64,000 bases of DNA from Macrostomum hystrix (lineage: Eukaryota > Animalia > Platyhelminthes): NCBI GenBank assembly GCA_950097015.1, contig CATNEN010000026.1:1364001-1428000 (forward strand), written 5' to 3'. Positions 1 to 53,994 of the stretch are shown piece after piece. Position 1 is the first letter of the stretch. Each line of letters opens with the position of its first letter. The notes beneath the pieces were generated by a model. That model was given only the letters and a program-made list of their open reading frames with translations, searched no databases and was not told the DNA's origin. Made by a program: the position numbers and the translations under genes.

Positions 1-919
1 CCATATACTGGCCCATATTGGCCCACATATACTGGCCCATATTGGCCCACATATGCTGCCACATATACTGGCCCATATTGGCCCACATATACTGGCCCAT
101 ATTGGCCCACATATGCTGCCACATATACTGGCCCATATTGGCCCACATATACTGCCACATATACTGGCCCATATTGGCCCACATATACTGCCACATATAC
201 TGGCCCATATTGGCCCACATATGCTGCCACATATACTGGCCCATATTGGCTCACATATACTGGCCCATATTGGCCCACATATACTGGCCCATATTGGCCC
301 ACATATACTGGCCCATATTGGCCCACATATACTGGCCCATATTGGCCCACATATACTGGCCCATATTGGCCCACATATACTGGCCCATATTGGCCCACAT
401 ACGCTGGTTCATATTGGCCCACATATACTGGCCCATATTGGCCCACATATGCTGGCCCATATTGGCCCACATATACTGGCCCATATTGGCCCACATACGC
501 TGGTTCATATTGGCCCACATATACTGGCCCATATTGGCTCACATATACTGGCCCATATTGGCCCACATATGCTGGCCCATATTGGCTCACATATGCTGGC
601 CCATATTGGCCCACATATACTGGCCCATATTGGCCCACATATACTGGCCCATATTGGCCCACATATACTGGCCCATATTGGCCCACATATACTGACCCAT
701 ATTGGCCCATATTGGCCCACATACGCTGGTTCATATTGGCCCACATATACTGGCCCATATTGGCCCACATATACTGGCCCATATTGGCTCACATATACTG
801 GCCCATATTGGCCCACATATACTGACCCATATTGGCCCATATTGGCCCACATATCCCAGCCTATATTGGCCTACATATACTGGCCCATATTGGCCCACAT
901 ACGCTGGCCCATATTGGCT
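1..919 (+). repeat. 24-bp tandem array CCATATTGGCCCACATATACTGGC (left arm), with 12-bp insertion variants
   Basis: Direct reading; translates as HIYWPILA repeats. Confidence 0.97.
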
Positions 920-1223
920 GGTCCATATATTATAGCGCATAGGGCCAAAGTAATTACTAATTACTATAAAAAACAAGTACCTATTTCTCTTTAATACGGC
1001 TTGCCTCTTAAATATTTACTTGCCATGTAACTAATTGTGAATGGATTGTGAATGAGCAATGCTTGTATTGCGCAAAACTTGCACAGCAACATGTGTAGGA
1101 TACAAGTAGGAAACAAATTAATAGAAAGATTGTAACGCATGGATTGATTGGTTGACTGAAAGGTTCAGTCATGTAGGACACATTTGGTTTTCATAACCAC
1201 ATACTCTCCGCTGCATCTATAGT

Positions 1224-1697
1224 CTAGGTTTTCTTCTTCGCTTCAGCAGCTGACAGATCCCGCAATGGCCGCTTACGACGAGGCAACGACTTCATAGCTT
1301 CGATAGGCGCTTCAGGGGGTGTAGGGGGCATCTCGATTGCCCAAAACTGGGCATCGCCAGTTCGAATCTTCGGCTGGTTGCTGCGATGCCTGCCGGCCAC
1401 CTGTAGCCTCTTTCTTCGACTCTCAGGCGACAGATCGGCAAACCAGGCCTCGCAGTCCGGACAACAGTGCGCCTGGAGCTCCAGTCTGTCCTCTTTGCGT
1501 CGGCAGACATGCACACAGGCCGGCCCGGAGCTTCTCTCTGGAAGCCGATTGTAATCCGCTCGAATTTCAGCCGCCGTCTTTCCTTCGAATATGCCGCCTA
1601 AGGCGTGCCGACGAACCCCGTCTCTGGGGCCTGCGGCCTCAGACCCATCATCGCCGCACTCGCCGGGGCCCTGGGTCTCAGACCCATCATCGCCGCA
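1224..1697 (-). CDS. RBBP8: CtIP/Sae2 (RBBP8) C-terminal domain, isolated; no in-frame ATG (spliced exon or captured fragment)
   Basis: VCRRKEDRLELQAHCCPDCEAWFADLSPESRRKRLQVAGRHRS...FWAIEMPPT aligns with the CtIP C-terminus as I recall it ([41 protein letters not shown]...FWEVGFPST). CxxC, RHR and FW..P are retained. The frame is open from 1697 to TAG at 1224-1226. Confidence 0.8.
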   Translation of the reverse strand, partial: CGDDGSETQGPGECGDDGSEAAGPRDGVRRHALGGIFEGKTAAEIRADYNRLPERSSGPACVHVCRRKEDRLELQAHCCPDCEAWFADLSPESRRKRLQVAGRHRSNQPKIRTGDAQFWAIEMPPTPPEAPIEAMKSLPRRKRPLRDLSAAEAKKKT

Positions 1698-1850
1698 TCA
1701 TCATCATATATATTCTCGGGATCGGGATCGGGATTGGGATATATATATATACTCGGGATCGAGTACCTTCAACCCTTAATCGATACTTTATCACTTTGAA
1801 ACCTTCAAGACGAACAAATCAGTTACAAAATCACTGCGGGGAACAATCGC

Positions 1851-3990
1851 TTAAGGATCGATATCGGCGGCATCGTTTTCGCCGGCTCCGGCGGCAACAG
1901 TGGCAGTAGCTGCGGCGCCAGCGTTGTCGCCGACAACGGAGGCACCAGCTGCCGCGGCAGTCGGGACATCGGCGGCGGTAACGGTCTGCAGTCCCCTCTG
2001 CGTACGGGCCGTGCGCCTGAAAACGCTGCCCAGTAGAGTATCCGGCAAGCGTTTGGTCTGTGTGAGAACGAAGAAAGTGAAGTAATGAAAAACTAATATT
2101 CTAACAGTTTATATACAATGTATTCCGATGCTGTAGACATGACGCTGCACTAAATCGCCCAAAATAGTAGTACAACTAGTGTAGAACAGCAATGCACATA
2201 ATATTATGTACTAAAGAAAAGAAAAAGAAAAAGAAACAGTTAGTGTACAGCTTACGTCCAATTTTTTCTCTAGTAGATAAGCTCGGATGGCCCGCTTTTT
2301 CGTCTCGTCCAATCCCGGCCTGTTTGGCTTGTTTGATTTTTTGCTCTGGCGCCCTTCCCAGGAAGAGCCACTGAAGTCGGCAACAGTCAGGACGCCTCGG
2401 AAAAGTGTGCGGAGCATCGTGCCGCGCAGCTTTTGGCTGGTATCCGCCGCCTTGTATGCGCTGACGGCGGCCTCAATTTTGTTTAGCTTAGTGGTGGAAA
2501 CCGTCACAGTAGGGATGCTGCTTACTAAGGGCACAAGGACATCGGCATCCGCGATGGCATGAGCGGCTGTCCGCTGAGCAGCTGACGATCGCGATAGTCC
2601 CATTGAATCTATTGCCGCTGAGATGCCCAGCTGGCACACAAATGAAGATCTGCCGGCATCGTCGGTGCTGGAGTCGATGCTAGACGGCAAAACTGTAGCG
2701 TCGTGGGTATCTGACGGAAGTACATCAGAACCAACACAGTTGCTATCTGCAGACACAGCAGGCCCTCCGGTTGAATGCGCCATTATACTGTTGGGTAGTG
2801 CTTCCCATGTGGCGTTTAACTGCCTCAATAGTTCGTGGCCATATTGCAACGCCTGCTTGCCTGAGTCGACCATAAGTCGGGCAACTCTGTCGGCCTGCAG
2901 TGTACTGCGGCCCAGGGTGCGTATAGCGTTCGTCAAACGCTCGTTGAAATCAACGGCAGTCTGTAGGCGAGTGTCGTAGTCAGCCAGTAAGTCGTGATTC
3001 TGGGTTATTACGGCGTCTCTATCTTTGAGATCTTGAATCAGAGTCTCGTTCAGATTTTTGAGAGCCTCAAGCTCATCATTTAGGCGCCTGTTTGTTTCAA
3101 TTTCTGCGTCTGTTCGCTTCTGGGCATCCTGAACGCCGCTGCGGAGCTTGTGACACTCAACTTCCAGATTTCTGCAGCGTACGCAGTCACCGTCTGGCAC
3201 ATTAATTGTCGTCGTGCTAAGGACGCTTCGATTACTCGAATTAGGGCGGCCTGTTGACGACGAAGCGGCGGTGGAAGCCTGGTGCACGATGCGGCCCATG
3301 GCAGACGTTGCATCCTTTCGTATTCGAAAGGGGCCTGCGGTAATAAAAGCGCGATGCTTTTTGGCGCCAATGCTGCGTCCCGTGACGACATCAACCGCCG
3401 CGCCGATAGCTCGTTGGGCAGGTACGGCCGGCGAGACAATGTTTTTTGCGCTCACAACCTGAGAATGTAGATCAGTGGCATTCAAGTGGGATCGTGGAAT
3501 CCGATCATGATATCGACATGTCGGTATACTGCACACGTACATCTGCATCTGCATGTAGGGATGCTAAAATTTCAGATTCGCTCACCTGCAGAGAATTTGA
3601 AGAGCAGTAAGTGACTACCCAGAAGCTGTCACTCTGGATAGCAGGCGCAGCGATGGCAACTGGACTAGCGGAAGCATCAGCAGGCGGAATCTTCCGCTGC
3701 TGTAGCGGAAACCGTTTAGCTTTTCGGTTCTGTTGACCATCCTCGTCAGTTACGTCTGCAGCAGCTGATGCGCTCGGCGGCAGTGGGTCTTCCGTGCACC
3801 GGACCCGCTTGGATTCAGCGCTGCACTCATCAATTGCAGCTGCAGACCTCTTCAGCTGGTCTGTGTGGTCTGCGTGGCCGAAGTTGCTGTTGGCGTCCAA
3901 GTCGACATTCTTGCGTACAGCGGGTTTCCTTGGCTTGGCCGTCTGAGCCGCTTTTTCGGAGGCCTTCTGCTGCTTAGCCGTGGCCTTGGC
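1851..3990 (-). CDS. Coiled-coil + C-terminal BEN-domain protein (exons ~3990-3586, 3548-2256, 2057-1851; start codon not identified)
   Basis: GT-AG introns 3585-3549 (37 nt) and 2255-2058 both join in phase 0. Heptad coiled coil (LEVECHKLRSG...LNDELEALKNLNETLIQDLKD). BEN-like MLRTLFRGVLTVADFSGSSWEGRQSKKSNKPNRPGLDETKKRAIRAYLLEKKLD|TKRLPDTLLGSVFRRTARTQR resembles the BEN consensus (LL..LF..eel...s..G.......pLDp.kl..I). Confidence 0.72.
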
Positions 3991-4148
3991 TTATATTTCA
4001 TTGTGATATTAAACAAAGTTACATCATTTGCGCTGTGCAACTTGGACTTTAAAGTCATAAAAAACGTATTCGAATGCTAGTGAAAAAACAATCCATTTAT
4101 CTAGCCATTGACAAGCATACGCATTGGCTATTTAAATCCTTTTGCATG

Positions 4149-5995
4149 AGCCAATATGGGCCAGTATATGTGGGCCAATATGGGCCAGTATATGTGGGCC
4201 AATATGGGCCAGCATATGTGAGCCAATATGGGCCAGCATATGTGAGCCAATATGGGCCAGTATATGTGGGCCAATATGGGCCAGCATATGTGAGCCAATA
4301 TGGGCCAGCATATGTGAGCCAATATGGGCCAGTATATGTGGGCCAATATGGGCCAGCATATGTGAGCCAATATGGGCCAGTATATGTGGGCCAATATGGG
4401 CCAGCATATGTGAGCCAATATGGGCCAGTATATGTGGGCCAATATGGGCCAGCGTATGTGGGCCAATATGGGCCAGTATATGTGGGCCAATATGGGCCAG
4501 TATATGTGGGCCAATATGGGCCAGCGTATGTGGGCCAATATGGGCCAGTATATGTGGGCCAATATGGGCCAGTATATGTGGGCCAATATGGGCCAGCGTA
4601 TGTGGGCCAATATGGGCCAGTATATGTGGGCCAATATGGGCCAGCGCATGTGGGCCAATATGGGCCAGTATATGTGGGCCAATATGGGCCAGCATATGTG
4701 AGCCAATATGGGCCAGTATATGTGGGCCAATATGGGCCAGTATATGTGGGCCAGTATATGTGGCAGTATATGTGGGCCAATATGGGCCAGTATATGTGGC
4801 AGTATATGTGGGCCAATATGGGCCAGTATATGTGGACCAATATGGGCCAGTATATGTGGGCCAATATGGGCCAGTATATGTGGGCCAATATGGGCCAGTA
4901 TATGTGGGCCAATATGGGCCAGTATATGTGGCAGTATATGTGGGCCAATATGGGCCAGTATATGTGGCAGTATATGTGGGCCAATATGGGCCAGTATATG
5001 TGGCAGTATATGTGGGCCAATATGGGCCAGTATATGTGGGCCAATATGGGCCAGTATATGTGGCAGTATATGTGGGCCAATATGGGCCAGTATATGTGGG
5101 CCAATATGGGCCAGCGTATGTGGGCCAATATGGGCCAGTATATGTGGGCCAATATGGGCCAGCGCATGTGGGCCAATATGGGCCAGTATATGTGGGCCAA
5201 TATGGGCCAGCATATGTGAGCCAATATGGGCCAGTATATGTGGGCCAATATGGGCCAGTATATGTGGGCCAGTATATGTGGCAGTATATGTGGGCCAATA
5301 TGGGCCAGTATATGTGGCAGTATATGTGGGCCAATATGGGCCAGTATATGTGGGCCAATATGGGCCAGTATATGTGGGCCAATATGGGCCAGTATATGTG
5401 GGCCAATATGGGCCAGTATATGTGGGCCAATATGGGCCAGTATATGTGGCAGTATATGTGGGCCAATATGGGCCAGTATATGTGGCAGTATATGTGGGCC
5501 AATATGGGCCAGTATATGTGGCAGTATATGTGGGCCAATATGGGCCAGTATATGTGGGCCAATATGGGCCAGTATATGTGGCAGTATATGTGGGCCAATA
5601 TGGGCCAGTATATGTGGGCCAATATGGGCCAGTATATGTGGGCCAATATGGGCCAGTATATGTGGGCCAATATGGGCCAGTATATGTGGCAGTATATGTG
5701 GGCCAATATGGGCCAGTATATGTGGCAGTATATGTGGGCCAATATGGGCCAGTATATGTGGGCCAATATGGGCCAGTATATGTGGCAGTATATGTGGGCC
5801 AATATGGGCCAGTATATGGGCCAGTATATGTGGGCCAATATGGGCCAGTATATGTGGCAGTATATGTGGGCCAATATGGGCCAGTATATGTGGCAGTATA
5901 TGTGGGCCAATATGGGCCAGTATATGTGAGCCAATCTGGGTCAGCATATGTGGGCCAATATGGGCCAGCGCATGTGGGCCAATATGGGCCAGCAT
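4149..5995 (-). repeat. 24-bp tandem array, reverse complement of 1-919 (right arm), with internal ~518-bp duplication
   Basis: GCCAATATGGGCCAGTATATGTGG repeats; the variant GCGCATG context recurs at 4644 and 5162. Confidence 0.97.
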
Positions 5996-6470
5996 TCTTG
6001 GGTCACAATAGTGGGCCGAAAGTGGGCTGAATTGGACATTCGGCTCGTTATATGGGCCAATTATTAATGGGCTCTTAATGGGCCTATGTGGGCCACTTGT
6101 TGGCCCATCTATATGTGGGCCGAAACTGGGCAAAAAGCCCGCAAATTGGGCTAAAAGGCACTGGCCCACTGTTGGCCCACTGAAAAGCCCATACTTGCAT
6201 GAAAAAAGCCCTTTGGTTTGGCAACCGGGTCTATCTAGTAGATCTATCAATCAGCATCCACATCTATCTAGTAGATCTATCAATCAGCATCTACATTTAT
6301 CTTGTAATCTTGTTTATCTTGTAGATTAATCAATCGGAATCAACATTTATATTCTAGACCTATTTATCAATCAGGATCTAGTTTTTATCTATAGTAAATA
6401 TCTATAGAATAATCTTGTAGATCTAGACCTATATCTATAGATCCAACACAAGTGTCAAGCCATCGCCCAC

Positions 6471-6884: not shown

Positions 6885-7243
6885 ATAATTATAATTATAT
6901 TATATTATAATAATAATAATAATTATTATTATTATTATTATTGATTACACCTGCCCTAACTGCCAAAACTGCAGCCGACAGCACAACAGCAGCAATTGCG
7001 CAGCGCATCTGAAGGCTGCGTACGACTGTTCAGTCCATGGACTGGGGGGACGCCACGACCACCCTCAATCGTTTACATTATGGGTACAATGCTGGTACCT
7101 ATTTAATTGCTGAGTGAACTGAAGCAATGCAGAGTTGAATGTCTTGCTAAACGACACAGTTTGTTTTAGTGGGGTCGGGAATCGAACCCCCGACCTTCAA
7201 GTCGTGAGTCCGACACTCTAACCACTAGGCTATAAGCCCACGC
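6885..7243 (-). mobile_element. tRNA-headed SINE with CORE-like central domain and (TAA)n tail, copy 1
   Basis: A box TAGTGGTTAGAG, B box GGTTCGATT, and a central GTGTC..TAGCAAGACA..AACTCTGC..CAGTTCAC..AAAT.GGTACC resembling the MIR/CORE domain. Homologous to 27787-28075. Confidence 0.8.
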
Positions 7244-7420: not shown

Positions 7421-9297
7421 CTACAATGAACCCCCAGTTGACAATGATCCCCCAGTTGACAATGATCCCCCAGTTGACAATGAACCCCCAGTTGACAACG
7501 ATCCCACAGTTGACAATGATCCCCCATTTGACAATGATCCCCCAGTTGACAATGATCCCACAGTTAACAATGATCCCCCAGTTGACAAAGATCCCCCAGT
7601 TCACAATGATCACCCAGTTGATGATGATCCCCCAGTTGATGATGATCCCCCAGTTGACAATGAACCCCCAGTTGACAATGAACCCCCAGTTGACAACGAT
7701 CCCACAGTTGACAATGATCCCCCATTTGACAATGATCCCCCAGTTGACAATGATCCCACAGTTGACAATGATCCCCCAGTTGACAATGATCCCCCAGTTG
7801 ACAATGATCCCCCAGTTAACAAAGATCCCCCAGTTCACAATGATCCCCCAGTTGATGAAGTCTCCCCATTGATGATGATCCCCAGTTAACAATGTTCCTC
7901 CATTTGACAATGTTCCCCCAGTTGACAATGATCCCCCAGTTGATGATGATCACCCAGTTGACAATGATCCCCCAGTTGATGATGATCCCCCAGTTGACAA
8001 TGAACCCCCAGTTGACAATGAACCCCCAGTTGACAACGATCCCACAGTTGACAATGATCCCCCATTTGACAATGATCCCCCAGTTGACAATGATCCCACA
8101 GTTGGCAATGATCCCCCAGTTGACAAAGATCCCCCAGTTCACAATGATCACCCAGTTGATGATGATCCCCCAGTTGATGATGATCCCCCAGTTGAAAATG
8201 ATCCCCCAGTTGACAATGATCCCCCATTTGACAATGATCCCCCAGTTGACAATGATCCCCCAGTTAACAAAGATCCCCCAGTTCACAATGATCCCCCAGT
8301 TGATGAAGTCTCCCAATTGATGATGATCCCCAGTTAACAATGTTCCTCCATTTGACAATGTTCCCCCAGTTAACAATGATCCCCCAGTTAATGATGATTC
8401 CCCAGTTGAAAATGATCCCCCAGTTGACAATGATCCCCCAGTTGAGAATGATCCCCCAGTTGACAATGATCCCCCAGTTAACAAAGATCCCCCAGTTCAC
8501 AATGATCCCCCAGTTGATGAAGTCTCCCCATTGATGATGATCCCTAGTTAACAATGTTCCTCCAGTTGACAATGTTCCCCCAGTTGACAATGATCCCCCA
8601 GTTGATGATGATCCCCCAGTTGACAATGATCCCCAGTTGACAATGATCCCCCAGTTGACAATGATCCCCCAGTTGACAATGATCCCGCCGGTTGACAATG
8701 ATCCCACAGTTGACAATGAACCCCCAGTTGACAATGATCCCCCAGTTGATGAATGATCCCCCAGTTGACAATGGTCCCCCAGTTGACAATGATCCCCCAG
8801 TTGACAATGAACCCCCAGTTGACAACGATCCCCCAGTTGACAATGATCCCCCAGTTGACAATGATCCCCCAGTTGACAATGATCCCACAGTATACAATGA
8901 TCCCCCAGTTGACAAAGATCCCCCAGTTCTCAATGATCCCCCAGTTGATGATGATCCCCAGTTGATGATGATTCCCCAGTTGACAATTATCCCCCAGTTG
9001 ACCATTACCCCCCACTTGACAATGATCTCTCAGTTCACAATGATCCCCCAGTTGACAATGATCCCCCAGTTGACAATGAACCCCCAGTTGACAATGAACC
9101 CCCAGTTGACAAAGATCCCCCAGTTGACAATGATCCCCCATTTGACAATGATCCCCCAGTTGACAATGATCCCCCAGTTGACAATGATCCCCCGGTTGAC
9201 ATTGATCCCCCAGTCGACAATTATCCCCCAGTTTACCATGATCCCCCAGTTCACCATGATCCCCATTTTGATGATGACTCCCCAGTTGACGTTGATT
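7421..9297 (+). repeat. 18-bp minisatellite CCCCCAGTTGACAATGAT (~100 copies)
   Basis: Direct reading; MIPQLT repeat ORFs. Confidence 0.97.
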
Positions 9298-9309
9298 TTT
9301 CAAACAGGT

Positions 9310-12300
9310 TAGCCAAGATTCAAACTCAGGTTTCGCCATGTTTTAAACCCTGGTGGGCTATGATTCAAACTCTCGTTTTGCCATGATTCAGACTCTGGTT
9401 GGCTATGATTCAAACTCTGGTTTAGCCATGATTCAGACGCTGGTTTAGCCATGATTCAGACGCTGGTTTAGCCATGATTGAAACTCTGGTTTAGCCATGA
9501 TTCAAACTCTGGTTTAGCCATGATTCAGACGCTGGTTTAGCCATGATTCAGACTCTAGTTTAGCCATGATTCAGACTCTAGGTTTAGCCATGATTCAGAC
9601 TCTAGTTTAGCCATGATTCAGACTCTAGTTTAGCCATGATTCAGACTCTAGGTTTAGCCATGATTCAGACTCTGGTTTAGCCATGATTCAGACTCTATTT
9701 TAGCCATGATTCAGACTATGGTTTAGCCATGATTCAGACGCTGGTTTAGCCATGATTCAGACGCTGGTTTAGCCATGATTCAGACGCTGGTTTAGCCATG
9801 ATTGAAACTCTGGTTTAGCCATGATTCAAACTCTGGTTTAGCCATGATTCAGACGCTGGTTTAGCCATGATTCAGACTCTAGTTTAGCCATGATTCAGAC
9901 TCTGGTTTAGCCATGATTCAGACTCTGGTTTAGCCATGATTCAGACTCTATTTTAGCCATGATTCAGACTATGGTTTAGCCATGATTCAGACTCCAGTTT
10001 TGCCATGATTCAGACTCTGGTTTAGCCATGATTCAGACTCTGGTTTAGCCATGATTCAGACTCTGGTTAAGCCATGATTCAGACTCTGGTTTAGCCATGA
10101 TTTAAATTCTGGTTAAGCCATGATTCAGACTCTGGTTTAGCCATGATTCAAACTCTGGTTAAGCCATGATTCGAACTCTGGTTTAGCCATGATTCAAACT
10201 CTGGTTTAGCCATGATTCAAACTCTGGTTTAGCCATGATTCAGACGCTGGTTTAGCCATGATTCAGACTCTAGTTTAGCCATGATTCAGACTCTGGTTTA
10301 GCCATGATTCAGACTCTAGTTTAGCCATGATTCAGACTCTGGTTTAGCCATGATTCAGACTATAGTTTAGCCATGATTCAGACTCTGGTTTAGCCATGAT
10401 TCAGACTCTATTTTAGCCATGATTCAGACTCTGGTTTAGCCATGATTCAGACTCTATTTTAGCCATGATTCAGACTATGGTTTAGCCATGATTCAGACTC
10501 CAGGTTTAGCCATGATTCAGACTCTAGTTTAGCCATGATTCAGACTCTGGTTTAGCCATGATTCAGACTCTGTTTAAGCCATGATTCAGACTCTGGTTTA
10601 GCCATGATTCAAATTCTGGTTAAGCCATGATTCAGACTCTGGTTTAGCCATGATTCAGACTCTAGTTTAGCCATGATTCAGACTCTGGTTTAGCCATGAT
10701 TCAGACTCTATTTTAGCCATGCTTCAGACTATGGTTTAGCCATGATTCAGACTCCAGGTTTAGCCATGATTCAGACTCTGGTTTAGCCATGATTCAGACT
10801 CTGGTTTAGCCATGATTCAGACTCTGGTTAAGCCATGATTCAGACTCTGGTTTAGCCATGATTCAGACTCTGGTTTAGCCATGATTCAGACGCTGGTTTA
10901 GCCATGATTCAGACTCTGGTTTAGCCATGATTCAGACTCCAGTTTAGCCATGATTCAAGCTCATGGCTAAACCATGGTTTAGCCATGATTCAGACGCTGG
11001 TTTAGCCATGATTCAGACTCTAGTTTAGCCATGATTCAGACTCTGGTTTAGCCATGATTCAGACTCTAGTTTAGCCATGATTCAGACTCTGGTTTAGCCA
11101 TGATTCAGACTCTAGTTTAGCCATGATTCAGACTCTGGTTTAGCCATGATTCAGACTCTATTTTAGCCATGCTTCAGACTATGGTTTAGCCATGATTCAG
11201 ACTCCAGTTTAGCCATGATTCAGACTCTGGTTTAGCCATGATTCAGACTCTGGTTTAGCCATGATTCAGACTCTGGTTTAGCCATGATTCAGACGCTGGT
11301 TTAGCCATGATTCAGACTCTAGTTTAGCCATGATTCAGACTCTGGTTTAGCCATGATTCAGACTCTGGTTTAGCCATGATTCAAACTCTGGTTAAGCCAT
11401 GATTCAAACTCTGGTTTAGCCATGATTCAAACTCTGGTTTAGCCATGATTCAGACGCTGGTTTAGCCATGATTCAGACTCTGGTTTAGCCATGATTCAGA
11501 CTATGGTTTAGCCATGATTCAGACTATGGTTTAGCCATGATTCAAACTCTGGTTTAGCCATGATTCAGACTCTAGTTTAGCCATGATTCAGACTCTGGTT
11601 TAGCCATGATTCAGACTCTATTTTAGCCATGATTCAGACTATGGTTTAGCCATGATTCAGACGCTGGTTTAGCCATGATTCAGACGCTGGTTTAGCCATG
11701 ATTCAGACGCTGGTTTAGCCATGATTGAAACTCTGGTTTAGCCATGATTCAAACTCTGGTTTAGCCATGATTCAGACGCTGGTTTAGCCATGATTCAGAC
11801 TCTAGTTTAGCCATGATTCAGACTCTGGTTTAGCCATGATTCAGACTCTAGTTTAGCCATGATTCAGACTCTGGTTTAGCCATGATTCAGACTCTATTTT
11901 AGCCATGATTCAGACTATGGTTTAGCCATGATTCAGACTCCAGTTTTGCCATGATTCAGACTCTGGTTTAGCCATGATTCAGACTCTGGTTTAGCCATGA
12001 TTCAGACTCTGGTTAAGCCATGATTCAGACTCTGGTTTAGCCATGATTTAAATTCTGGTTAAGCCATGATTCAGACTCTGGTTTAGCCATGATTCAAACT
12101 CTGGTTAAGCCATGATTCAAACTCTGGTTTAGCCATGATTCAAACTCTGGTTTAGCCATGATTCAGACGCTGGTTTAGCCATGATTCAGACTCTAGTTTA
12201 GCCATGATTCAGACTCTGGTTTAGCCATGATTCAGACTCTAGTTTAGCCATGATTCAGACTCTGGTTTAGCCATGATTCAGACTCTAGTTTAGCCATGAT

Positions 12301-15300
12301 TCAGACTCTGGTTTAGCCATGATTCAGACTCTATTTTAGCCATGATTCAGACTCTGGTTTAGCCATGATTCAGACTCTATTTTAGCCATGATTCAGACTA
12401 TGGTTTAGCCATGATTCAGACTCCAGTTTTAGCCATGATTCAGACTCTGGTTTAGCCATGATTCAGACTCTGGTTTAGCCATGATTCAGACTCTGTTTAA
12501 GCCATGATTCAGACTCTGGTTTAGCCATGATTTAAATTCTGGTTAAGCCATGATTCAGACTCTGGTTTAGCCATGATTCAGACTCTAGTTTAGCCATGAT
12601 TCAGACTCTGGTTTAGCCATGATTCAGACTCTATTTTAGCCATGCTTCAGACTATGGTTTAGCCATGATTCAGACTCCAGTTTTGCCATGATTCAGACTC
12701 TGGTTTAGCCATGATTCAGACTCTGGTTTAGCCATGATTCAGACTCTGGTTAAGCCATGATTCAGACTCTGGTTTAGCCATGATTCAGACTCTGGTTTAG
12801 CCATGATTCAGACGCTGGTTTAGCCATGATTCAGACTCTGGTTTAGCCATGATTCAGACTCCAGTTTAGCCATGATTCAAGCTCATGGCTAAACCATGGT
12901 TTAGCCATGATTCAGACGCTGGTTTAGCCATGATTCAGACTCTAGGTTTAGCCATGATTCAGACTCTGGTTTAGCCATGATTCAGACTCTAGTTTAGCCA
13001 TGATTCAGACTCTGGTTTAGCCATGATTCAGACTCTAGTTTAGCCATGATTCAGACTCTGGTTTAGCCATGATTCAGACTCTATTTTAGCCATGCTTCAG
13101 ACTATGGTTTAGCCATGATTCAGACTCCAGTTTTAGCCATGATTCAGACTCTGGTTTAGCCATGATTCAGACTCTGGTTTAGCCATGATTCAGACTCTGG
13201 TTTAGCCATGATTCAGACGCTGGTTTAGCCATGATTCAGACTCTAGGTTTAGCCATGATTCAGACTCTGGTTTAGCCATGATTCAGACTCTGGTTTTAGC
13301 CATGATTCAAACTCTGGTTAAGCCATGATTCAAACTCTGGTTTAGCCATGATTCAAACTCTGGTTTAGCCATGATTCAGACGCTGGTTTAGCCATGATTC
13401 AGACTCTGGTTTAGCCATGATTCAGACTATGGTTTAGCCATGATTCAGACTATGGTTTAGCCATGATTCAAACTCTGGTTTAGCCATGATTCAGACTCTA
13501 GTTTAGCCATGATTCAGACTCTGGTTTAGCCATGATTCAGACTCTATTTTAGCCATGATTCAGACTATGGTTTAGCCATGATTCAGACGCTGGTTTAGCC
13601 ATGATTCAGACGCTGGTTTAGCCATGATTCAGACGCTGGTTTAGCCATGATTGAAACTCTGGTTTAGCCATGATTCAAACTCTGGTTTAGCCATGATTCA
13701 GACGCTGGTTTAGCCATGATTCAGACTCTAGTTTAGCCATGATTCAGACTCTGGTTTAGCCATGATTCAGACTCTAGTTTAGCCATGATTCAGACTCTGG
13801 TTTAGCCATGATTCAGACTCTATTTTAGCCATGCTTCAGACTATGGTTTAGCCATGATTCAGACTCCAGTTTTGCCATGATTCAGACTCTGGTTTAGCCA
13901 TGATTCAGACTCTGGTTAAGCCATGATTCAGACTCTGGTTTAGCCATGATTTAAATTCTGGTTAAGCCATGATTCAGACGCTGGTTTAGCCATGATTCAG
14001 ACTCTAGTTTAGCCATGATTCAGACTCTGGTTTAGCCATGATTCAGACTCTAGTTTAGCCATGATTCAGACTCTGGTTTAGCCATGATTCAGACTCTAGT
14101 TTAGCCATGATTCAGACTCTGGTTTAGCCATGATTCAGACTCTATTTTAGCCATGATTCAGACTCTGGTTTAGCCATGATTCAGACTCTATTTTAGCCAT
14201 GATTCAGACTATGGTTTAGCCATGATTCAGACTCCAGTTTTGCCATGATTCAGACTCTGGTTTAGCCATGATTCAGACTCTGGTTTAGCCATGATTCAGA
14301 CTCTGTTTAAGCCATGATTCAGACTCTGGTTTAGCCATGATTTAAATTCTGGTTAAGCCATGATTCAGACTCTGGTTTAGCCATGATTCAGACTCTAGTT
14401 TAGCCATGATTCAGACTCTGGTTTAGCCATGATTCAGACTCTATTTTAGCCATGCTTCAGACTATGGTTTAGCCATGATTCAGACTCCAGTTTTGCCATG
14501 ATTCAGACTCTGGTTTAGCCATGATTCAGACTCTGGTTTAGCCATGATTCAGACTCTGGTTAAGCCATGATTCAGACTCTGGTTTAGCCATGATTCAGAC
14601 TCTGGTTTAGCCATGATTCAGACGCTGGTTTAGCCATGATTCAGACTCTGGTTTAGCCATGATTCAGACTCCAGTTTAGCCATGATTCAGACTCTGGTTT
14701 AGCCATGATTCAGACTCTAGTTTAGCCATGATTCAGACTCTGGTTTAGCCATGATTCAGACTCTAGTTTAGCCATGATTCAGACTCTGGTTTAGCCATGA
14801 TTCAGACTCTGGTTTAGCCATGATTCAGACTCTAGTTTAGCCATGATTCAGACTCTGGTTTAGCCATGATTCAGACTCTAGTTTAGCCATGATTCAGACT
14901 CTGGTTTAGCCATGATTCAGACTCTATTTTAGCCATGATTCAGACTCTGGTTTAGCCATGATTCAGACTCTATTTTAGCCATGATTCAGACTATGGTTTA
15001 GCCATGATTCAGACGCTGGTTTAGCCATGATTCAGACGCTGGTTTAGCCATGATTCAGACGCTGGTTTAGCCATGATTGAAACTCTGGTTTAGCCATGAT
15101 TCAAACTCTGGTTTAGCCATGATTCAGACGCTGGTTTAGCCATGATTCAGACTCTAGTTTAGCCATGATTCAGACTCTGGTTTAGCCATGATTCAGACTC
15201 TAGTTTAGCCATGATTCAGACTCTGGTTTAGCCATGATTCAGACTCTATTTTAGCCATGCTTCAGACTATGGTTTAGCCATGATTCAGACTCTAGTTTAG

Positions 15301-18300
15301 CCATGATTCAGACTCTGGTTTAGCCATGATTCAGACTCTGGTTTAGCCATGATTCAGACTCTAGTTTAGCCATGATTCAGACTCTGGTTTAGCCATGATT
15401 CAGACTATGGTTTAGCCATGATTCAAACTCTGGTTTAGCCATGATTCAGACTCTAGTTTAGCCATGATTCAGACTCTGGTTTAGCCATGATTCAGACTCT
15501 ATTTTAGCCATGATTCAGACTATGGTTTAGCCATGATTCAGACGCTGGTTTAGCCATGATTCAGACGCTGGTTTAGCCATGATTGAAACTCTGGTTTAGC
15601 CATGATTCAAACTCTGGTTTAGCCATGATTCAGACGCTGGTTTAGCCATGATTCAGACTCTAGTTTAGCCATGATTCAGACTCTGGTTTAGCCATGATTC
15701 AGACTCTAGTTTAGCCATGATTCAGACTCTGGTTTAGCCATGATTCAGACTCTATTTTAGCCATGCTTCAGACTATGGTTTAGCCATGATTCAGACTCCA
15801 GTTTTGCCATGATTCAGACTCTGGTTTAGCCATGATTCAGACTCTGGTTTAGCCATGATTCAGACTCTGGTTAAGCCATGATTCAGACTCTGGTTTAGCC
15901 ATGATTTAAATTCTGGTTAAGCCATGATTCAGACTCTGGTTTAGCCATGATTCAAACTCTGGTTAAGCCATGATTCAAACTCTGGTTTAGCCATGATTCA
16001 AACTCTGGTTTAGCCATGATTCAGACGCTGGTTTAGCCATGATTCAGACTCTAGTTTAGCCATGATTCAGACTCTGGTTTAGCCATGATTCAGACTCTAG
16101 TTTAGCCATGATTCAGACTCTGGTTTAGCCATGATTCAGACTCTAGTTTAGCCATGATTCAGACTCTGGTTTAGCCATGATTCAGACTCTATTTTAGCCA
16201 TGATTCAGACTCTGGTTTAGCCATGATTCAGACTCTATTTTAGCCATGATTCAGACTATGGTTTAGCCATGATTCAGACTCCAGTTTTGCCATGATTCAG
16301 ACTCTGGTTTAGCCATGATTCAGACTCTGGTTTAGCCATGATTCAGACTCTGTTTAAGCCATGATTCAGACTCTGGTTTAGCCATGATTTAAATTCTGGT
16401 TAAGCCATGATTCAGACTCTGGTTTAGCCATGATTCAGACTCTAGTTTAGCCATGATTCAGACTCTGGTTTAGCCATGATTCAGACTCTATTTTAGCCAT
16501 GCTTCAGACTATGGTTTAGCCATGATTCAGACTCTGGTTTAGCCATGATTCAGACTCTATTTTAGCCATGCTTCAGACTATGGTTTAGCCATGATTCAGA
16601 CTCCAGTTTTGCCATGATTCAGACTCTGGTTTAGCCATGATTCAGACTCTGGTTTAGCCATGATTCAGACTCTGGTTTAGCCATGATTCAGACGCTGGTT
16701 TAGCCATGATTCAGACTCTAGTTTAGCCATGATTCAGACTCTGGTTTAGCCATGATTCAGACTCTGGTTTTGCCATGATTCAAACTCTGGTTAAGCCATG
16801 ATTCAAACTCTGGTTTAGCCATGATTCAAACTCTGGTTTAGCCATGATTCAGACGCTGGTTTAGCCATGATTCAGACTCTGGTTTAGCCATGATTCAGAC
16901 TATGGTTTAGCCATGATTCAGACTATGGTTTAGCCATGATTCAAACTCTGGTTTAGCCATGATTCAGACTCTAGTTTAGCCATGATTCAGACTCTGGTTT
17001 AGCCATGATTCAGACTCTATTTTAGCCATGATTCAGACTATGGTTTAGCCATGATTCAGACGCTGGTTTAGCCATGATTCAGACGCTGGTTTAGCCATGA
17101 TTCAGACGCTGGTTTAGCCATGATTGAAACTCTGGTTTAGCCATGATTCAAACTCTGGTTTAGCCATGATTCAGACGCTGGTTTAGCCATGATTCAGACT
17201 CTAGTTTAGCCATGATTCAGACTCTGGTTTAGCCATGATTCAGACTCTAGTTTAGCCATGATTCAGACTCTGGTTTAGCCATGATTCAGACTCTATTTTA
17301 GCCATGCTTCAGACTATGGTTTAGCCATGATTCAGACTCCAGTTTTGCCATGATTCAGACTCTGGTTTAGCCATGATTCAGACTCTGGTTAAGCCATGAT
17401 TCAGACTCTGGTTTAGCCATGATTTAAATTCTGGTTAAGCCATGATTCAGACGCTGGTTTAGCCATGATTCAGACTCTAGTTTAGCCATGATTCAGACTC
17501 TGGTTTAGCCATGATTCAGACTCTAGTTTAGCCATGATTCAGACTCTGGTTTAGCCATGATTCAGACTCTAGTTTAGCCATGATTCAGACTCTGGTTTAG
17601 CCATGATTCAGACTCTATTTTAGCCATGATTCAGACTCTGGTTTAGCCATGATTCAGACTCTATTTTAGCCATGATTCAGACTATGGTTTAGCCATGATT
17701 CAGACTCCAGTTTTGCCATGATTCAGACTCTGGTTTAGCCATGATTCAGACTCTGGTTTAGCCATGATTCAGACTCTGTTTAAGCCATGATTCAGACTCT
17801 GGTTTAGCCATGATTTAAATTCTGGTTAAGCCATGATTCAGACTCTGGTTTAGCCATGATTCAGACTCTAGTTTAGCCATGATTCAGACTCTGGTTTAGC
17901 CATGATTCAGACTCTATTTTAGCCATGCTTCAGACTATGGTTTAGCCATGATTCAGACTCCAGTTTTGCCATGATTCAGACTCTGGTTTAGCCATGATTC
18001 AGACTCTGGTTTAGCCATGATTCAGACTCTGGTTAAGCCATGATTCAGACTCTGGTTTAGCCATGATTCAGACTCTGGTTTAGCCATGATTCAGACGCTG
18101 GTTTAGCCATGATTCAGACTCTGGTTTAGCCATGATTCAGACTCCAGTTTAGCCATGATTCAGACTCTGGTTTAGCCATGATTCAGACTCTAGTTTAGCC
18201 ATGATTCAGACTCTGGTTTAGCCATGATTCAGACTCTAGTTTAGCCATGATTCAGACTCTGGTTTAGCCATGATTCAGACTCTATTTTAGCCATGCTTCA

Positions 18301-19110
18301 GACTATGGTTTAGCCATGATTCAGACTCCAGTTTTGCCATGATTCAGACTCTGGTTTAGCCATGATTCAGACTCTGGTTTAGCCATGATTCAGACTCTGG
18401 TTTAGCCATGATTCAGACGCTGGTTTAGCCATGATTCAGACTCTAGTTTAGCCATGATTCAGACTCTGGTTTAGCCATGATTCAGACTCTGGTTTTGCCA
18501 TGATTCAAACTCTGGTTAAGCCATGATTCAAACTCTGGTTTAGCCATGATTCAAACTCTGGTTTAGCCATGATTCAGACGCTGGTTTAGCCATGATTCAG
18601 ACTCTGGTTTAGCCATGATTCAGACTATGGTTTAGCCATGATTCAGACTATGGTTTAGCCATGATTCAGACTATGGTTTAGCCATGATTCAAACTCTGGT
18701 TTAGCCATGATTCAGACTCTGGTTTAGCCATGATTCAGACGCTGGTTTAGCCATGATTCAGACTCTGGTTTAGCCATGATTTAAACTCAGGTTTAGCCAT
18801 GATTCAGACTCTGGTTTAGCCATGATTTAAACTCTGGTTTAGCCATGATTCAGACTCTGGTTTAGCCATGATTCAGACGCTGGTTTAGCCATGATTCAAA
18901 CTCTGGTTTAGCCATGCTTCAAACTCTGGTTTAGCCATGATTAAAACTCTGGTTTAGCCATGATTTAAACTCTGGTTTAGCCATGATTTAAACTCTGGTT
19001 TAGCCATGATTCAAGCTCTGGTTTCGCCATGATTCAGACTATGGTTTAGCCATGATTCAGACGCTGGTTTAGCCATGATTCAGACTCTATTGTTGCAATG
19101 ATTCAAACTC
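9310..19110 (+). repeat. 23-bp satellite TTTAGCCATGATTCAGACTCTGG (~9.8 kb, ~425 copies) with higher-order repeats
   Basis: Direct reading; variant monomers recur at ~1.92-kb spacing; the ORF track has no ORF here. Confidence 0.98.
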
Positions 19111-19214
19111 AGATTTGCTATGATTTATGATATTTTATTTACGAAATGAAAAAAATAAATCAAAATAATCTTCAATCACTACTGGCTGAAAATTAGTTTA
19201 AATGATTTGACGCA

Positions 19215-24204: not shown

Positions 24205-24614
24205 CGGTGCCCGATCTGCACGGCTAACACTCGCAACTCGTCCGCCCGCTGACGGCAGAACTGGGCGCTCCGATCTGAAGCCCGACTGGCCGAGGCGGAC
24301 CACAAGGCGGCCGGGTGTGGCAGCGCGTCATCTCCGCTAACAATGACTGACCTGCCACCGCCAGCAACAGCTGCCGTCACTGCTGGCATCAAACGATTGG
24401 CATTGCTGTCGCTGCTACCGAATCCACAGCTGTCAACCAGCTCTGGCATTAGAAGAAATTCGATGTGATCGCCGCCGATGCCGACGCCATTGTCGGCAGT
24501 AGCTGTGCCACCTCCGACACGTGCTGAGGCAGCATTTTGTCGAATTATTCTATAGGCTTGACATTCCGGCGATGCAATCCAGCGATTCCATGTGGCATCC
24601 TCTGCTGGCTGCAT
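24205..24614 (-). CDS. HERC2: HERC2-like, probable first coding exon (MQPAEDATWNRWIAS...)
   Basis: ATG at 24614; GC-rich open frame; donor CG|GTAGGA is in phase 2 with exon 2; little recognisable homology. Confidence 0.6.
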
Positions 24615-26439
24615 TGCTGGCAAAATATTTAGCAAACAATTTGGCGCTAAAAATAAAGAGCAAGTTGCTAATGCTTAATAATTTTTTTTTCAAAATTCAA
24701 TGTGCTTTACTTTACTGATAAACTAAGGTGTGTTCTTATTAATACTAAGTTAAACCATACTTAAACTATTTAAGATAAATGAATTAATAATGCTTATAAC
24801 AAATATGCCTGGTTATATCATCACCAGCCCTCCTAAGTATAGATTAAGGTGGTTAATATGATACATGACAGATAAAACAATAACCTAACAGTTCTATATG
24901 GATTATCTAATTGGGTTAGGAAGCTAATCAAAAAGGTTACAAGACTTTTCATGGGTAAAAATAAGAAAGTATGTAACTGACAACTGAATTTATTTACAGA
25001 GGTACCATTTTAATAAAAAAATATCTAGAAAACATTACAAGCCAATTGAGATATGGGGTAGAATAAATTGACAACAGCTACAACTTGCTTACAACACATT
25101 TTTTAGTATTTATTGTAAGCATTTGCTTATCTAATTAATTGATGCAGGTGGGGTCGACACAATAAATAATAATACAAAATAAGTATATTTAAAGGAAAAT
25201 ACTAAAATATAAGACTTATCTATAACTTCATAATACACATTTTATAATTTAAACAGTAAAATATTTTTACATTGAATTATAACTGATTTACAAAATATAA
25301 GGATGCCAAAAAAATCAACTACCTAGTCATTTATATTGGTTGGAAATGGGCAAGTGTGCTATCTGCATAGAGCTTTTAGGCAGTCATTTTGTTTGAGTGT
25401 CTATCATATAGGTCATAGAGTGCAAAAATTGCTTAGTATAATGTCTTAGAGGTTTGTACAACAAATATGTAGTTGATTTCATAATAAAATAAGAAAATAC
25501 TATACACAGCAAACATATTATGATGAGCTATTTTATATTAGCATTATCTACTATTTGATTTTAACTTATTTTTAAAACAATATTATAAATTAGAATTTTT
25601 TTCTAATTTATATTTTTGTGCTTGTGCTTATTTTTTATTCACATACAACATTCATATCTATATACTGTTGATTGATTCATTTAAATAGTTTTTAACCTTT
25701 GTCACGAATTATTTAGAATATACGAGTGTATATGTTTTTTTAAACATTATTAACATGAAGATATAAGAAATATTTAAAAAAGCTTGTCAAGGACAGGGAC
25801 ATTTGTCTGGCATCCCCCAACAGCTGAAGCAAAGCACAAACAAGCTAGGGGTTAGTACAATATAATGATTAGATCGATCATCCAGTCTATTTATATGAAA
25901 TGTATTTTTTGCTAATATTCTAATCATCTGAAAGCTATGAACGAATTCTTTTGTGAGTTCAGACTCAATACTCAACAAAACTACTTTCTCCAAATTAACT
26001 ATTGCTGGAAGCTTTAACAGTCCATAAATGTATCGCAATTAATAAAAGATAAAGCGTGTTGCATTTATCTTTATTGTTGACAAAATATACTTTCAAAACG
26101 ATAAGTACTTTGTACTAATATAGTTTTTACACCTATATCGTTTGGCAGTATTGATTGGTTGTTTCCTAGAATACGCAATGTTCGCCTTAAGTTAAAAATT
26201 ACATTGCAATCTGTATTTTAATACACAAGTCTATATTAAAAAATCGCTTTACTTTTTTTAATTTATGTAAGTTTATTTAACTAATCTAAATATTTCTCAG
26301 ACTAGTAATATCTAAAAGTTTATTTTTTGTTATTGCGAATGCTGCTAAGACAAATATATTTAGTTTTGTGGCTTCTGCTGAATTTAATGTTTTGTGTTAC
26401 CGAATTGCCTTTAACAACAAAAATAAAACTTGTAAAGTA

Positions 26440-27234: not shown

Positions 27235-27786
27235 ATCAGATTTTTTGCTTCTTTTGTGAATTTGGCTAGACTCCAATTATAGAGTCGGAAAATTCAGAAA
27301 AATAATCTGTGTCGCTTTGTGACTTGTATAATAAGCTTAATTTTTCGAAAAATGCTATACTATATGCGTGTTTTTTATAAATTCAACATTTTGCAGTGAC
27401 TGAAGCAAAGAAATCGATACTTGCTGTTGTAATTTAAAACTTTTAATTATTTGCTTTAGTAACATTAGCTTCCGATGGAGTACTTATGAAGTCATGATAC
27501 CTGTACATGTCAACCAGTTATCAACCTATACTCGTGGACTATTTAGGGATTTCACTGACCTTCAAAACTATCCGATATTCTCATACACGAAATTTTTTTA
27601 AACTAGAAAATGTGATAACTTTGCAACGGAATGTGATTAAGAAACGTCACGATTCACTCGAAGATAGATAACACATTTTAATTATCTTTTAAGTTTGCAC
27701 TCGTAAAATAATAACATATTAAACACCTCTCGAAGAGCATCTCAGATGGGATTGGCTGCAGCTACGAGTAGTTCTGTTGCCGCAGT

Positions 27787-28075
27787 AGAGGTTTTAGCCT
27801 AGTGGTTAGAGCGTCGGACTCACGACTTGAAGGTCGGGGGTTCGATTTTTGACTCCACTGGAACAATTTGTGTCCTTTAGCAAGACACTTAACTCTGCAT
27901 TGCTTCAGTTCACCTAGCTGTTAAATGGGTACCAGCATTAGCTGGGATAATTGAGGGTGGGTGTGGCGTCCCCCAGTCCATAGACTGATCAGCCGTATGC
28001 AGCCTTCAGATGCGCCGCGCCATAACTGCGGCAGTGCTGTCGGCTGCAAATCTGGCCCAATGGGGCAGGTGTAAT
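27787..28075 (+). mobile_element. tRNA-headed CORE-like SINE, copy 2
   Basis: AGCCTAGTGGTTAGAGCGTCGGACTCACGACTTGAAGGTCGGGGGTTCGAT head; ends GGGCAGGTGTAAT like copy 1. Confidence 0.8.
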
Positions 28076-29788: not shown

Positions 29789-31644
29789 AATGGCCAGTTG
29801 GGATCGCTTCAGGATTTGGCCAGAACAGACAGGACGGGAGTAAATGGTCGCATGGATTTTTTGTCTCCGCTTTTTTCCCGCAGTCGTTTGCTTTTCAGCG
29901 TTTCTTGGGTGCCATGGTGACAGATTGGCTAGAAGGAAGCAGGCCAAGGGATTGACAGTGGGAGCCGTAAATTGACGGTTGGATAGGCTTGATGTGGACT
30001 TAAGCAAAGAGCTTAGCAAGCTACAGCTTCTGTCTGTAAGTTCTCTCATCGCGACAAGTTGCAATTAGTTGCAGTTTGTTAGTTGCAAGCGTTTCTCGAT
30101 TGCATCTGGCTGCTTAAGCCAGATTTTTTTTACATTTTTTCGGCCTTAGCTACCATTATAAGATCGTGAATGGATCTCACCTAAAGTTGTATTCGTTGAC
30201 GATTCCGCTTTATTTCAAATTACGAGCTATGACCTTTGTACCTTCCTCACTACTGCTGAGTAGTACGAAGTATCTATGGTAAATAAAGTTATATAATTTA
30301 CAGACGCCTAACTACCTGTATGAGTTGTTCATAACTCTGCGTTGCAGTAATTGTGCAACGCGACTGCCCGCATTATCGATGACAATAATGCACAGGTAGG
30401 GACCTCGGCAACTAAAGCATGGAATTGTCCCACGGTGGGTAAGCATGATCGCATGCATGCATGGGAACTGTTAGAGCAACGCGCATCCAGATAACTCGCG
30501 GGCCGTATTAGCCACTTATCCTTTCTGTCTCGATTGAAATCACCTGACTTCGTTTCTGGCATCGGGGCTGGCTAGCAGCGGGGGGAGGGGCTCTGGTTGC
30601 TTTGCCAGCAAGACACCATGCGAACAGATAGAGGAGCCAGATTCTGGCCCTGGGACCCACTTGCCATTCCAGACATGCTGCATTCTCTGCGACTGCGGCC
30701 TCGGCAGGGGTGCGCGGACTGGGCAAGGCGACGCAGGGCTACTTCGACCAACTCGACCTGCCACGCCCCCCACTGTCTGCTATCGCAGCCTTGACTACGA
30801 CGAGCACTGTGGGGGGCGGAGAATTAGGGGAAGACAGCATGGAGAAGAGCTGATTTGGGATTGAGGGGCAGGGTGCAGAGAGAGGACCCGTGGGAGTGGA
30901 GCAGCGGTCACTCTCACCTAGTCGCTAAGGCTGGCTTCCTGGAGATGGTGTCGCGAAGGACAGCACAAGCGTGTACGTCACATGCAGCAGCAGCTTAGGG
31001 TGTTGGCAAAGCTATAGCAGCCTTCCGCGGCCGGCGGACCCCGCCGGGTGATTGACAAAAACAAAAAAGCGTCTACCCCCCGTCCTGCGTCCGCAGATTG
31101 AGAAAACAAAGACCTGTGGGAATTAAGAAAAAAGTGGGGAAAACGCCCTAGGGGTTGGGCGGTGTTTTCGAATGCGCACAGAAGTGGGACAACCTTATGC
31201 TTGTGGGATTGGGATTCGGGCGGAGATGCGTTGTAAAATGGGGCATCTGGTTTCCTCCCTCCGGATTCTTCCATGCGCCCACCCCCAAGATGTCTATGGC
31301 GCAACTGGTACCCCCTAGTCATCTATTTGTCTTTCGAGTTCTGTGTTGTGAATTCCAGCCATTTTCCTGTTTCCAGTCCTGCAGAAGCATTTTATAGCAG
31401 CGCTTGATGAAGTAGCTCGCCATGTCGAGTGATGGAGGGACCATGCATAGGACTTTGTTTACCATTAAGCAAAAAATTGTCAACCCAAATCAAAGGGAAG
31501 CAATCAACAAAAACTTGCTGAATTCTTGTATTGAACTGCGTGGACACCTGTCCGCTTTGCGAATTGAAACATTCAGTCAAAATTGGCGTCACAATATTTT
31601 CCATGCCTGGAAATTTCGTCAAGACATTTTCACTTAGTTTAAAA

Positions 31645-31890
31645 CCTCGCGTCGGTAAAACCTCCCATCGGTAAAACCTCCCGTCGGTAAAACCTCCCGT
31701 CGGTAGAACCTCCCGTCGGTAGAACCTCCCGTCGGTAGAACCTCCCGTCGGTAGAACCTCCCGTCGGTAGAACCTCCCGTCGGTAGAACCTCCCGTCGGT
31801 AGAACCTCCCGTCGGTAGAACCTCCCGTCCGTACCTCCGTCGGTAGAACCTCCCGTCAGTAAAACCTCCCGTCGGTAGAACCTCCCAAAT
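31645..31890 (+). repeat. 16-bp tandem array TCCCGTCGGTAGAACC
   Basis: Direct reading. Confidence 0.95.
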
Positions 31891-44384: not shown

Positions 44385-44690
44385 TCCCGAATCTAAAATC
44401 CAGAATACCGAAAAAATTCCAAATCCTAAATCCCAAATCCCGAATCCGAAATCCCGAATCTAAAATCCGAAATCCGAAATCTTGAATCTAAAATCCGAAA
44501 TCCCGAATCCTCAATCCGAAATACCGAAAAATCCCAAAAACTAATCTCAAATCCCGAATCCGAAATTAATAATTCGAAATCCCGAATCTGAAATCCTGAA
44601 TCCGAAATCCCGAATATAAAATCTCGAATCCGAAATTCGAAATCCCAAATCTGTAATCCCGAATCTGAAATCCCGAATCGGAAATACCAA
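44385..44690 (+). repeat. Degenerate short-period array (AATCCGAAATCCC) just upstream of Notch exon 2
   Basis: Direct reading. Confidence 0.8.
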
Positions 44691-53990: not shown

Positions 53991-53994
53991 CAGT

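Follow-up and report, generated by a model that had tools for sequence, protein, structure and literature searches.

At the start of the window analysed here (the whole stretch of 64,000 nucleotides (nt) of the flatworm Macrostomum hystrix, assembly GCA_950097015.1, contig CATNEN010000026.1, positions 1,364,001 to 1,428,000 of the forward strand), we identified a probable copy of a DNA transposon family of the terminal inverted repeat (TIR) type, at a probability of roughly 0.68. Its long arms would be amplified arrays of a subterminal motif, and it would encode a BEN protein and a short CtIP/Sae2-like protein (mini-CtIP), with no recognisable transposase. We place the window in this family, and regard BEN and mini-CtIP as a conserved pair, because both genes and the arm design are common to the window and a mobile unit of Macrostomum lignano. 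A first-pass annotation of this DNA had described a mobile element with inverted arms of tandem subrepeats that carried BEN and CtIP; the TIRs, 3-bp target-site duplications (TSDs) and two insertion sites of the M. lignano unit back that description. The annotation had treated the two genes as cargo, and both are indeed carried; since the pair is conserved within the element family, it is better described as element-encoded than as a chance capture. The statement that no transposase is present also held, with no Pfam transposase domain in any open reading frame (ORF) of the window core or of the M. lignano element. The window copy is therefore described here as, probably, a family member without a transposase of its own.

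The relative was found in M. lignano assembly GCA_002269645.1, where one copy (L001) occupies positions 8857-16821 of NIVC01001566.1 and deletion derivatives lie in NIVC01002788.1 and NIVC01001309.1; the latter two (L002 and L003) have homologous flanks and represent one locus. L001 and L002 are each bounded on both sides by a perfect 36-bp TIR, CCCGTATAAAACGAAACGGTCACAAAAAGGGGCTGT, and flanked by 3-bp TSDs, TAA in L001 and CTA in L002. The flanks of L001 and L002 showed no similarity when compared, giving two unrelated insertion sites. On account of the TIRs, the TSDs and these two sites, the M. lignano unit is, judged from its sequence, a genuine mobile element. In L001, a 51-bp array (8935-9623) faces an inverted copy (16115-16711) with 95-97% complementarity, the inner arm edges being in matched register as in the window. 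Between the arrays, a mini-CtIP ORF of 282 amino acids (12157-13005) adjoins a BEN ORF on the same strand. The arrays and subterminal regions are built from the motifs GGTCAC/GGTAAC, which are infrequent in the rest of the locus, a parallel to GGCCCA in the window; in both elements the subterminal regions show strong enrichment of hexamer motifs. The L002 and L003 copies are internal-deletion derivatives, joined over a 13-bp microhomology, that have lost mini-CtIP.

Two further repeats were observed at the L001 locus. An additional 43-bp array (15365-15935) separates the BEN gene from the right arm. Outside the element, a 29-bp repeat occurs at 1257-1340 and, inverted and 15 kb away, at 16926-17057, and may mark a larger inverted structure.

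The arms of the window copy are built from a single 24-bp monomer. The left arm (1-919, plus strand) is a forward array of at least 35 units that runs past the window start, and the right arm (4149-5992, minus strand) is an inverted array of the same monomer. Tandem Repeats Finder (TRF) called 24-bp arrays at 2-918 and 4150-5992, and the consensus monomer GGCCCATATTGGCCCACATATACT gave 100 matches at ≤3 mismatches across the 64 kb, where none is expected by chance. These divided by strand into 34 plus matches (all within 10-905) and 66 minus matches (all within 4163-5990), with no match outside the two arms. The forward and inverted arrays of the first-pass annotation were borne out by the TRF calls and the strand-sorted matches, and so was its observation that both arrays stop at one register around the core. 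At their inner edges both arms end in CATATTGGCT (...CCCATATTGGCT), and they enclose a core of 3.2 kb. Neither edge is perfectly sharp: on the left the array degenerates into GGTCCATATAT, and on the right it may extend 4-5 nt further.

The right arm comprises 65 full units when split by unit, or ~77 monomer lengths by TRF, and contains a segmental duplication. Complementarity between the arms reaches 95% across 493 nt. The unit split separated monomer variants common to both arms, including a 36-bp unit, from others private to one arm, and the order of variants in the two arms, when compared, showed no mirror symmetry. It follows that the arms are old copies that evolve independently of each other, as opposed to a newly made palindrome; recent hairpin duplication was ruled out as their source. 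By the variants they share, the arms are of common origin and subsequently evolved through local duplication. The density of GGCCCA is 65 per kb in the left arm, and the arms together supply ~185 copies of one hexamer.

Because each array consists of 1-2 kb of near-identical units, and a leader exon seen in RNA is absent from the window (see below), we considered whether the inverted arrangement might be an assembly artefact of the repeat arrays. This is highly improbable: the inverted layout recurs at three loci (two independent insertion sites) in an independent assembly of another species, and the arm-core junctions consist of unique sequence, with RNA contigs reaching 997 and 3989.

The outer end of the right arm passes into a subterminal region (5993-6229, minus strand) with degenerate GGCCCA in both orientations. 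Outside the array, in 5993-6229, the hexamer occurs at 34 per kb, compared with <1 per kb in the core and neighbouring sequence. A sharp boundary follows at 6229, and the 33-bp minisatellite of the host intron starts at 6230. Read on the minus strand, the putative terminus is CCCGGTTGCCAAACCAAAGGGC; the putative right terminus (CCCGGTTGCCAAACC... at 6229) occurs once in the window, its mirrored form is ...GGTTTGGCAACCGGG/CCCGGTTGCC, and the bases immediately after 6229 are TCT. The right terminus CCCGGTTGCCAAACCAAAGGGCT shares an initial CCCG and a AAAGGGCT box with the M. lignano TIR, a weak but consistent resemblance. With first letters CCCGG in the window and CCCGTAT in M. lignano, the termini differ from CACTA, and we no longer call the element CACTA-like, as the first-pass annotation had done.

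An ordinary host locus would offer another account, in which a BEN gene and a CtIP remnant reside in an intron and a local inversion divided a minisatellite and turned part of it round, with no mobile element involved. Nearly all long introns in the window hold a minisatellite of their own, the variant order in the arms is not mirror-image, and the missing 5' leader exon could lie past an inversion breakpoint. Two findings make this account unlikely. M. lignano has the gene pair and register-matched inverted arrays within an element that is bounded by TIRs and TSDs and occupies two unrelated sites, and in the window the subterminal region outside the array is filled with the hexamer in both orientations, a pattern that fits transposon ends and not an inversion breakpoint. 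The first-pass annotation had assigned the intron to HERC2; neither Pfam nor the Atlas confirmed this identity for the flanking minus-strand exons, which matched no Pfam family and resembled beta-propellers only in a generic way. They do have a good donor near 6470.

Membership of the Drosophila-type foldback (FB) elements, also proposed in the first-pass annotation, is improbable. These elements (FB/NOF, Mutator-related) would be mobilised by NOF-like transposases, and they share with the window arms of tandem subrepeats that are degenerate toward the outer end and regular toward the inside. The TSD of the M. lignano element is 3 bp, however, instead of the 9-10 bp expected, and neither a Mutator-like element (MULE) domain nor a NOF domain was found in the window or the M. 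lignano element.

The first ORF of the core encodes a conserved N-terminal region and a CxxC pair, together with a coiled coil and a BEN-like domain, and ends in a TAA stop codon at 1853-1851. Its nearest Atlas clusters were BEND5 (score 0.88), and the PDB matches of a small family profile were confined to the BEN domain of NAC1 (E 0.18). An exhaustive HMMER search with the main exon against 1.84 billion representative proteins returned one true relative, P0002, a 'BEN domain-containing protein' (UniRef name) of M. lignano with the same domain order as in the window. Identity between the window and M. lignano is 34% over 85 amino acids of the BEN domain (E 8e-11) and 27% in the CxxC/coiled-coil part. 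Word-based protein searches with the BEN exon, the CtIP C-terminal ORF of the window (CtIP-C) and the M. lignano mini-CtIP gave no matches, nor did metagenome scans with the BEN exon and with a CtIP alignment. Existing annotation of the BEN ORFs of the M. lignano element goes no further than hypothetical or BEN domain-containing proteins (PAA66355.1, PAA55211.1, PAA69591.1). BEN domains are sequence-specific DNA binders, often acting as oligomers on short, often palindromic sites; Insv binds CCAATTGG (PMC4281564), and NAC1 binds ACATGT/CATG (PMC7764960, PMC11472053). The 24-bp monomer of the window includes CCAATATGG, and the 51-bp monomer of M. lignano includes ACATGT.

The gene model of P0002 itself showed an irregularity. 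It joins an acidic-repeat N-terminal ORF (L001 10001-10675) to the BEN ORF over a 3-kb 'intron' (10648-13750) with no canonical splice sites, and in L002 the same junction is present as contiguous DNA, over the 13-bp microhomology. Because L002 holds the junction contiguously and the L001 'intron' lacks canonical splice sites, the annotated L001 intron is probably a mapping artefact produced by transcripts of deleted copies.

The second gene, CtIP-C (1224-1697, minus strand), comprises 157 codons plus a stop and lies in the last exon, 3' of the BEN stop. Its translation contains the CxxC (CCPDC) and RHR motifs and FW...PPTPPE. Against the Pfam SAE2 profile (PF08573, cutoff 19.8 bits), a 96-amino-acid ORF scored 21.6 bits and the 157-amino-acid ORF 19.6 bits; Atlas SAE2 clusters scored 0.87-0.89. 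CtIP-C and the M. lignano mini-CtIP are 60% identical over 100 amino acids (E 4e-40), which in M. lignano are the last 100 residues of the 282. This conservation is much higher than that of the BEN partner (~30%), which argues for selection on the CtIP module. The C-terminal module of CtIP/Sae2 works with MRE11-RAD50 in cutting blocked or hairpin ends (PMC11341764, PMC5795780). The cyclin-dependent kinase (CDK) site equivalent to human T847 or yeast S267 is not TP in either protein, reading RTGDAQFW in the window and NYDPNFF in M. lignano. In human CtIP the corresponding site reads NTPENFW, and host CtIP/Sae2 needs this phospho-site for stimulation of the MRE11-RAD50-NBS1 complex (MRN). As the host-activating site is not conserved, mini-CtIP could be constitutive, otherwise regulated or a decoy.

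A short tandem duplication at the start of the CtIP-C ORF (1646-1696, GATGATGGGTCTGAG(A/G)CC...) interrupts every short-read assembly. The possibility that the core is a single CtIP gene, with an N-terminal coiled coil and a C-terminal domain, was rejected: an RNA contig spans the BEN stop codon, and the BEN relatives in M. lignano stop at the equivalent point without CtIP.

Three-frame translation and contigs from four same-species sequencing runs (X6-X9) resolved the core into one spliced minus-strand transcript. The runs are RNA-like, covering exons only and having GT..AG joints, and their contigs are 100% identical to the window. Expression of the core, for which the first-pass annotation had suggested an RNA check, was found in all four. 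That annotation had seen two co-oriented minus-strand coding units; both are on the minus strand, but they share one transcript and neither has its own ATG.

Beyond the left arm, a short unique spacer (920-996, minus strand) precedes the 3' end of the transcript, and the same-species RNA contigs end at ~997. The last exon (997-2057, minus strand) contains the BEN C-terminus (2057-1854), the stop codon and then CtIP-C; X6 contigs are contiguous over 2057-1663 and 1680-997 with even depth. It is preceded by an intron (2058-2255, minus strand) with donor GTAAGC and acceptor CAG, across which a same-species RNA contig joins 2256 to 2057. The main coding exon (2256-3548, minus strand) encodes the conserved N-terminal region, the CxxC pair, the coiled coil and most of the BEN domain. 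Frame analysis predicted a 37-nt mini-intron upstream of it (3549-3585, minus strand; 43 nt with an alternative acceptor at 3543/3542), which is needed for a single frame across the exons and which wastewater contigs read through unspliced. The upstream coding exon (3586-3989, minus strand) has an open frame of ~134 codons with no ATG and a 3' splice site AG at 3991-3990. The remaining spacer (3990-4148, minus strand) separates this acceptor from the right arm; it is unique, AT-rich sequence and forms the 3' end of an intron. An X6 contig carries a leader of at least 30 nt spliced at 3989, the leader-bearing exon ending ...CGGAATTAGGCCTGACCGCATTCACGAAGA. Both RNA 5' leaders were searched at the 9- to 30-mer level and were absent from the entire window. 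The 30-nt leader was rejected as a general spliced leader, because EF-hand transcripts (~26677) start leaderless in the same runs and it was absent from the loose ends listed.

The absence of the leader exon, an ACG instead of an ATG and a CtIP-C ORF lacking an ATG point to a rearranged copy; alternatively, individuals may differ structurally at the locus, or the core may flip between the arms. Because the copy lacks a 5' exon that is present in RNA, it is probably a rearranged or truncated member of the family, with at least one other copy or structural variant in the species.

Near-identical transcripts were also observed in wastewater metatranscriptomes from 2024 (X1-X4). These are ~99.7% identical to the core (880-4180) and divergent upstream of 3979, and one has an ATG at 3981-3979 where the window reads ACG. 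A 601-nt wastewater contig has only 1646-1685 in common with the CtIP-C ORF, followed by unrelated upstream sequence in frame. Given these transcripts with different 5' ends and the 601-nt contig, the species, or a strain close to it, inhabits wastewater and has structural variants or other copies of both genes.

Might the unit instead be a domesticated or decaying relic? In that event the copy would be immobile, BEN would have taken on a host function, such as that of a chromatin factor binding repeats, and the CtIP ORF would persist in the 3' untranslated region as a vestige that is not translated. The transcript is well expressed and spliced in the four RNA runs, CtIP-C lies without an ATG downstream of a stop codon, four of the five inter-strain variants in the BEN exon are non-synonymous and the arms have diverged from each other, all as a relic would have it. 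The 157-codon CtIP ORF is nevertheless intact and 60% identical to that of M. lignano, which would be hard to maintain without translation. There is also a predicted alternative acceptor at 1670 (phase 0), which would fuse the exon ending at 2256 in frame to CtIP-C; the 2256-1670 junction was in no RNA contig. On balance we grant a relic a small chance.

Several points weigh against our assignment of the window to a mobile TIR-type family. Of the window copy we see the right end alone; the left end, and with it the TIR pair, the TSD and the evidence for mobility, lies beyond the window. The M. hystrix side of the family is represented here by the copy in the window, the family is sampled in two species only and M. 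lignano contributes only two independent insertion sites. Gene order differs, being ORF1, mini-CtIP, BEN in M. lignano and BEN, CtIP-C in the window. Both window ORFs lack an ATG and the 30-nt RNA leader is absent from the 64 kb; the copy may be defective, the locus may vary among individuals or the RNA may stem from another copy. The BEN assignment has its own weaknesses, with Pfam BEN (PF10523) scores of 16.5 bits in the window and 15.2 bits in M. lignano, both below the cutoff of 23.2, and an AlphaFold2 (AF2) model of the BEN region with a predicted local distance difference test (pLDDT) score of 52, too poor for a fold test. Finally, the action of BEN on the arm repeats, and of mini-CtIP on ends and MRN, is something we infer from sequence.

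Transposons rely on host end-processing: Sae2/MRX opens hairpins at palindromes, and some transposons leave hairpins on excision. Long inverted arms and some transposase reactions are both sources of hairpin or blocked ends. In the mechanism we propose, the window copy would be mobilised in trans by a transposase that it does not encode. The oligomeric coiled-coil BEN protein would bind the repeated hexamers of both arms and pair or mark the ends, in the manner of TnpA, which binds the subterminal repeats of En/Spm. Mini-CtIP would engage host MRN and would process hairpin, cruciform or blocked ends arising from excision or from the palindromic arms, or would steer donor-site repair. In a more radical version, BEN would coat and pair the arms, mini-CtIP would recruit MRN to cut or open the resulting hairpin or cruciform and the family would move or copy itself by break-induced repair without a DDE transposase. 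We consider such self-sufficient mobility decidedly improbable; if true, a host repair nuclease would serve as the 'transposase' of the family.

In the full-text literature, a search with Repbase and Dfam outside its scope, we found no transposon described with a BEN domain, a CtIP/Sae2 module or both. The new part is the conserved accessory-gene pair of BEN and mini-CtIP; the TIR transposon with subterminal repeat arrays is the known part. The likely sites of the BEN protein appear amplified into kilobase arms, and we found no report in the literature of this arrangement paired with a CtIP module. If confirmed, the family would represent a new accessory-gene strategy for DNA transposons, a naturally occurring link between a cofactor dedicated to hairpin processing and long palindromic repeats, and an explanation for the seeding and upkeep of satellite-like arrays as inverted pairs. 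M. lignano is a laboratory flatworm amenable to RNA interference and transgenesis, and as its element has clean TIRs and TSDs, the hypothesis is directly testable there.

The remainder of the window is rich in repeats. Minisatellites fill nearly every long intron or spacer (7423-19125, 31643-37698, 40101-48834 and 51955-63489), examples being a 23-bp unit repeated over ~9.8 kb (9309-19125) and a 16-bp unit over 4.9 kb (32794-37698). A Notch-like gene with EGF and LNR domains (plus strand, ~45-62 kb) has several of them between its exons. An interspersed repeat of ~150-270 bp occurs at 27782-27980, 6962-7235 (inverted) and 51220-51319; its RNA word depth in the four same-species runs is ~1,900-4,000, compared with 5-150 for neighbouring genes, and it is probably an abundant transcribed family of MITEs (miniature inverted-repeat transposable elements) or one resembling short interspersed elements (SINEs). 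At the first exon (24205-24647) of the long minus-strand gene that the first-pass annotation called HERC2, transcripts in two runs continue for 20-23 further letters that do not match the window, which may be a 5' leader.

Among the systems compared, the M. lignano element shares with the window copy long inverted arms of a tandem subterminal motif, co-oriented coiled-coil/BEN and mini-CtIP ORFs, the absence of a transposase and a terminus starting CCCG. It differs in its monomer (51 bp versus 24 bp) and in its arms (0.7-0.8 kb versus ~2.1 kb in the window), its mini-CtIP has an ATG, lacking in CtIP-C, and a CxxC N-terminal part, and of the two only the M. lignano element has demonstrated TIRs and TSDs. 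Host CtIP/Sae2/Ctp1 resembles the window module in the C-terminal region, with its CxxC, RHR and F/W motifs and a SAE2 profile match above cutoff. The window module differs in having neither a long central region nor an N-terminal tetramerisation domain, in its position within a transposon-like unit and in having no TP at the T847 equivalent.

Drosophila FB/NOF, Galileo (P superfamily) and Caenorhabditis elegans Tc4 likewise have long inverted arms with tandem subrepeats around a variable central 'loop', often with the transposase missing. The 3-bp TSD of the M. lignano relative differs from those of FB (9-10 bp) and Galileo (7-8 bp), and to our knowledge a gene content of BEN plus mini-CtIP has been described for none of the three. 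A 3-bp TSD is compatible with CMC, PIF/Harbinger, Zator or Academ. PIF/Harbinger elements share both this TSD length and a separate DNA-binding accessory protein, there Myb-like; they differ in that one of our two TSDs (CTA) falls outside TWA, no DDE or Myb ORF is present and the termini are others. En/Spm (CACTA, CMC) differs in its CACTA termini, in contrast to CCCG here, and in its Transposase_21/Tnp2, for which no ORF was found; the binder here is of the BEN domain type and comes with a CtIP module. It shares the 3-bp TSD of the M. lignano relative and a short subterminal motif in both orientations, and its TnpA, a non-catalytic, element-encoded DNA binder, is a natural analogue of the role proposed for BEN.

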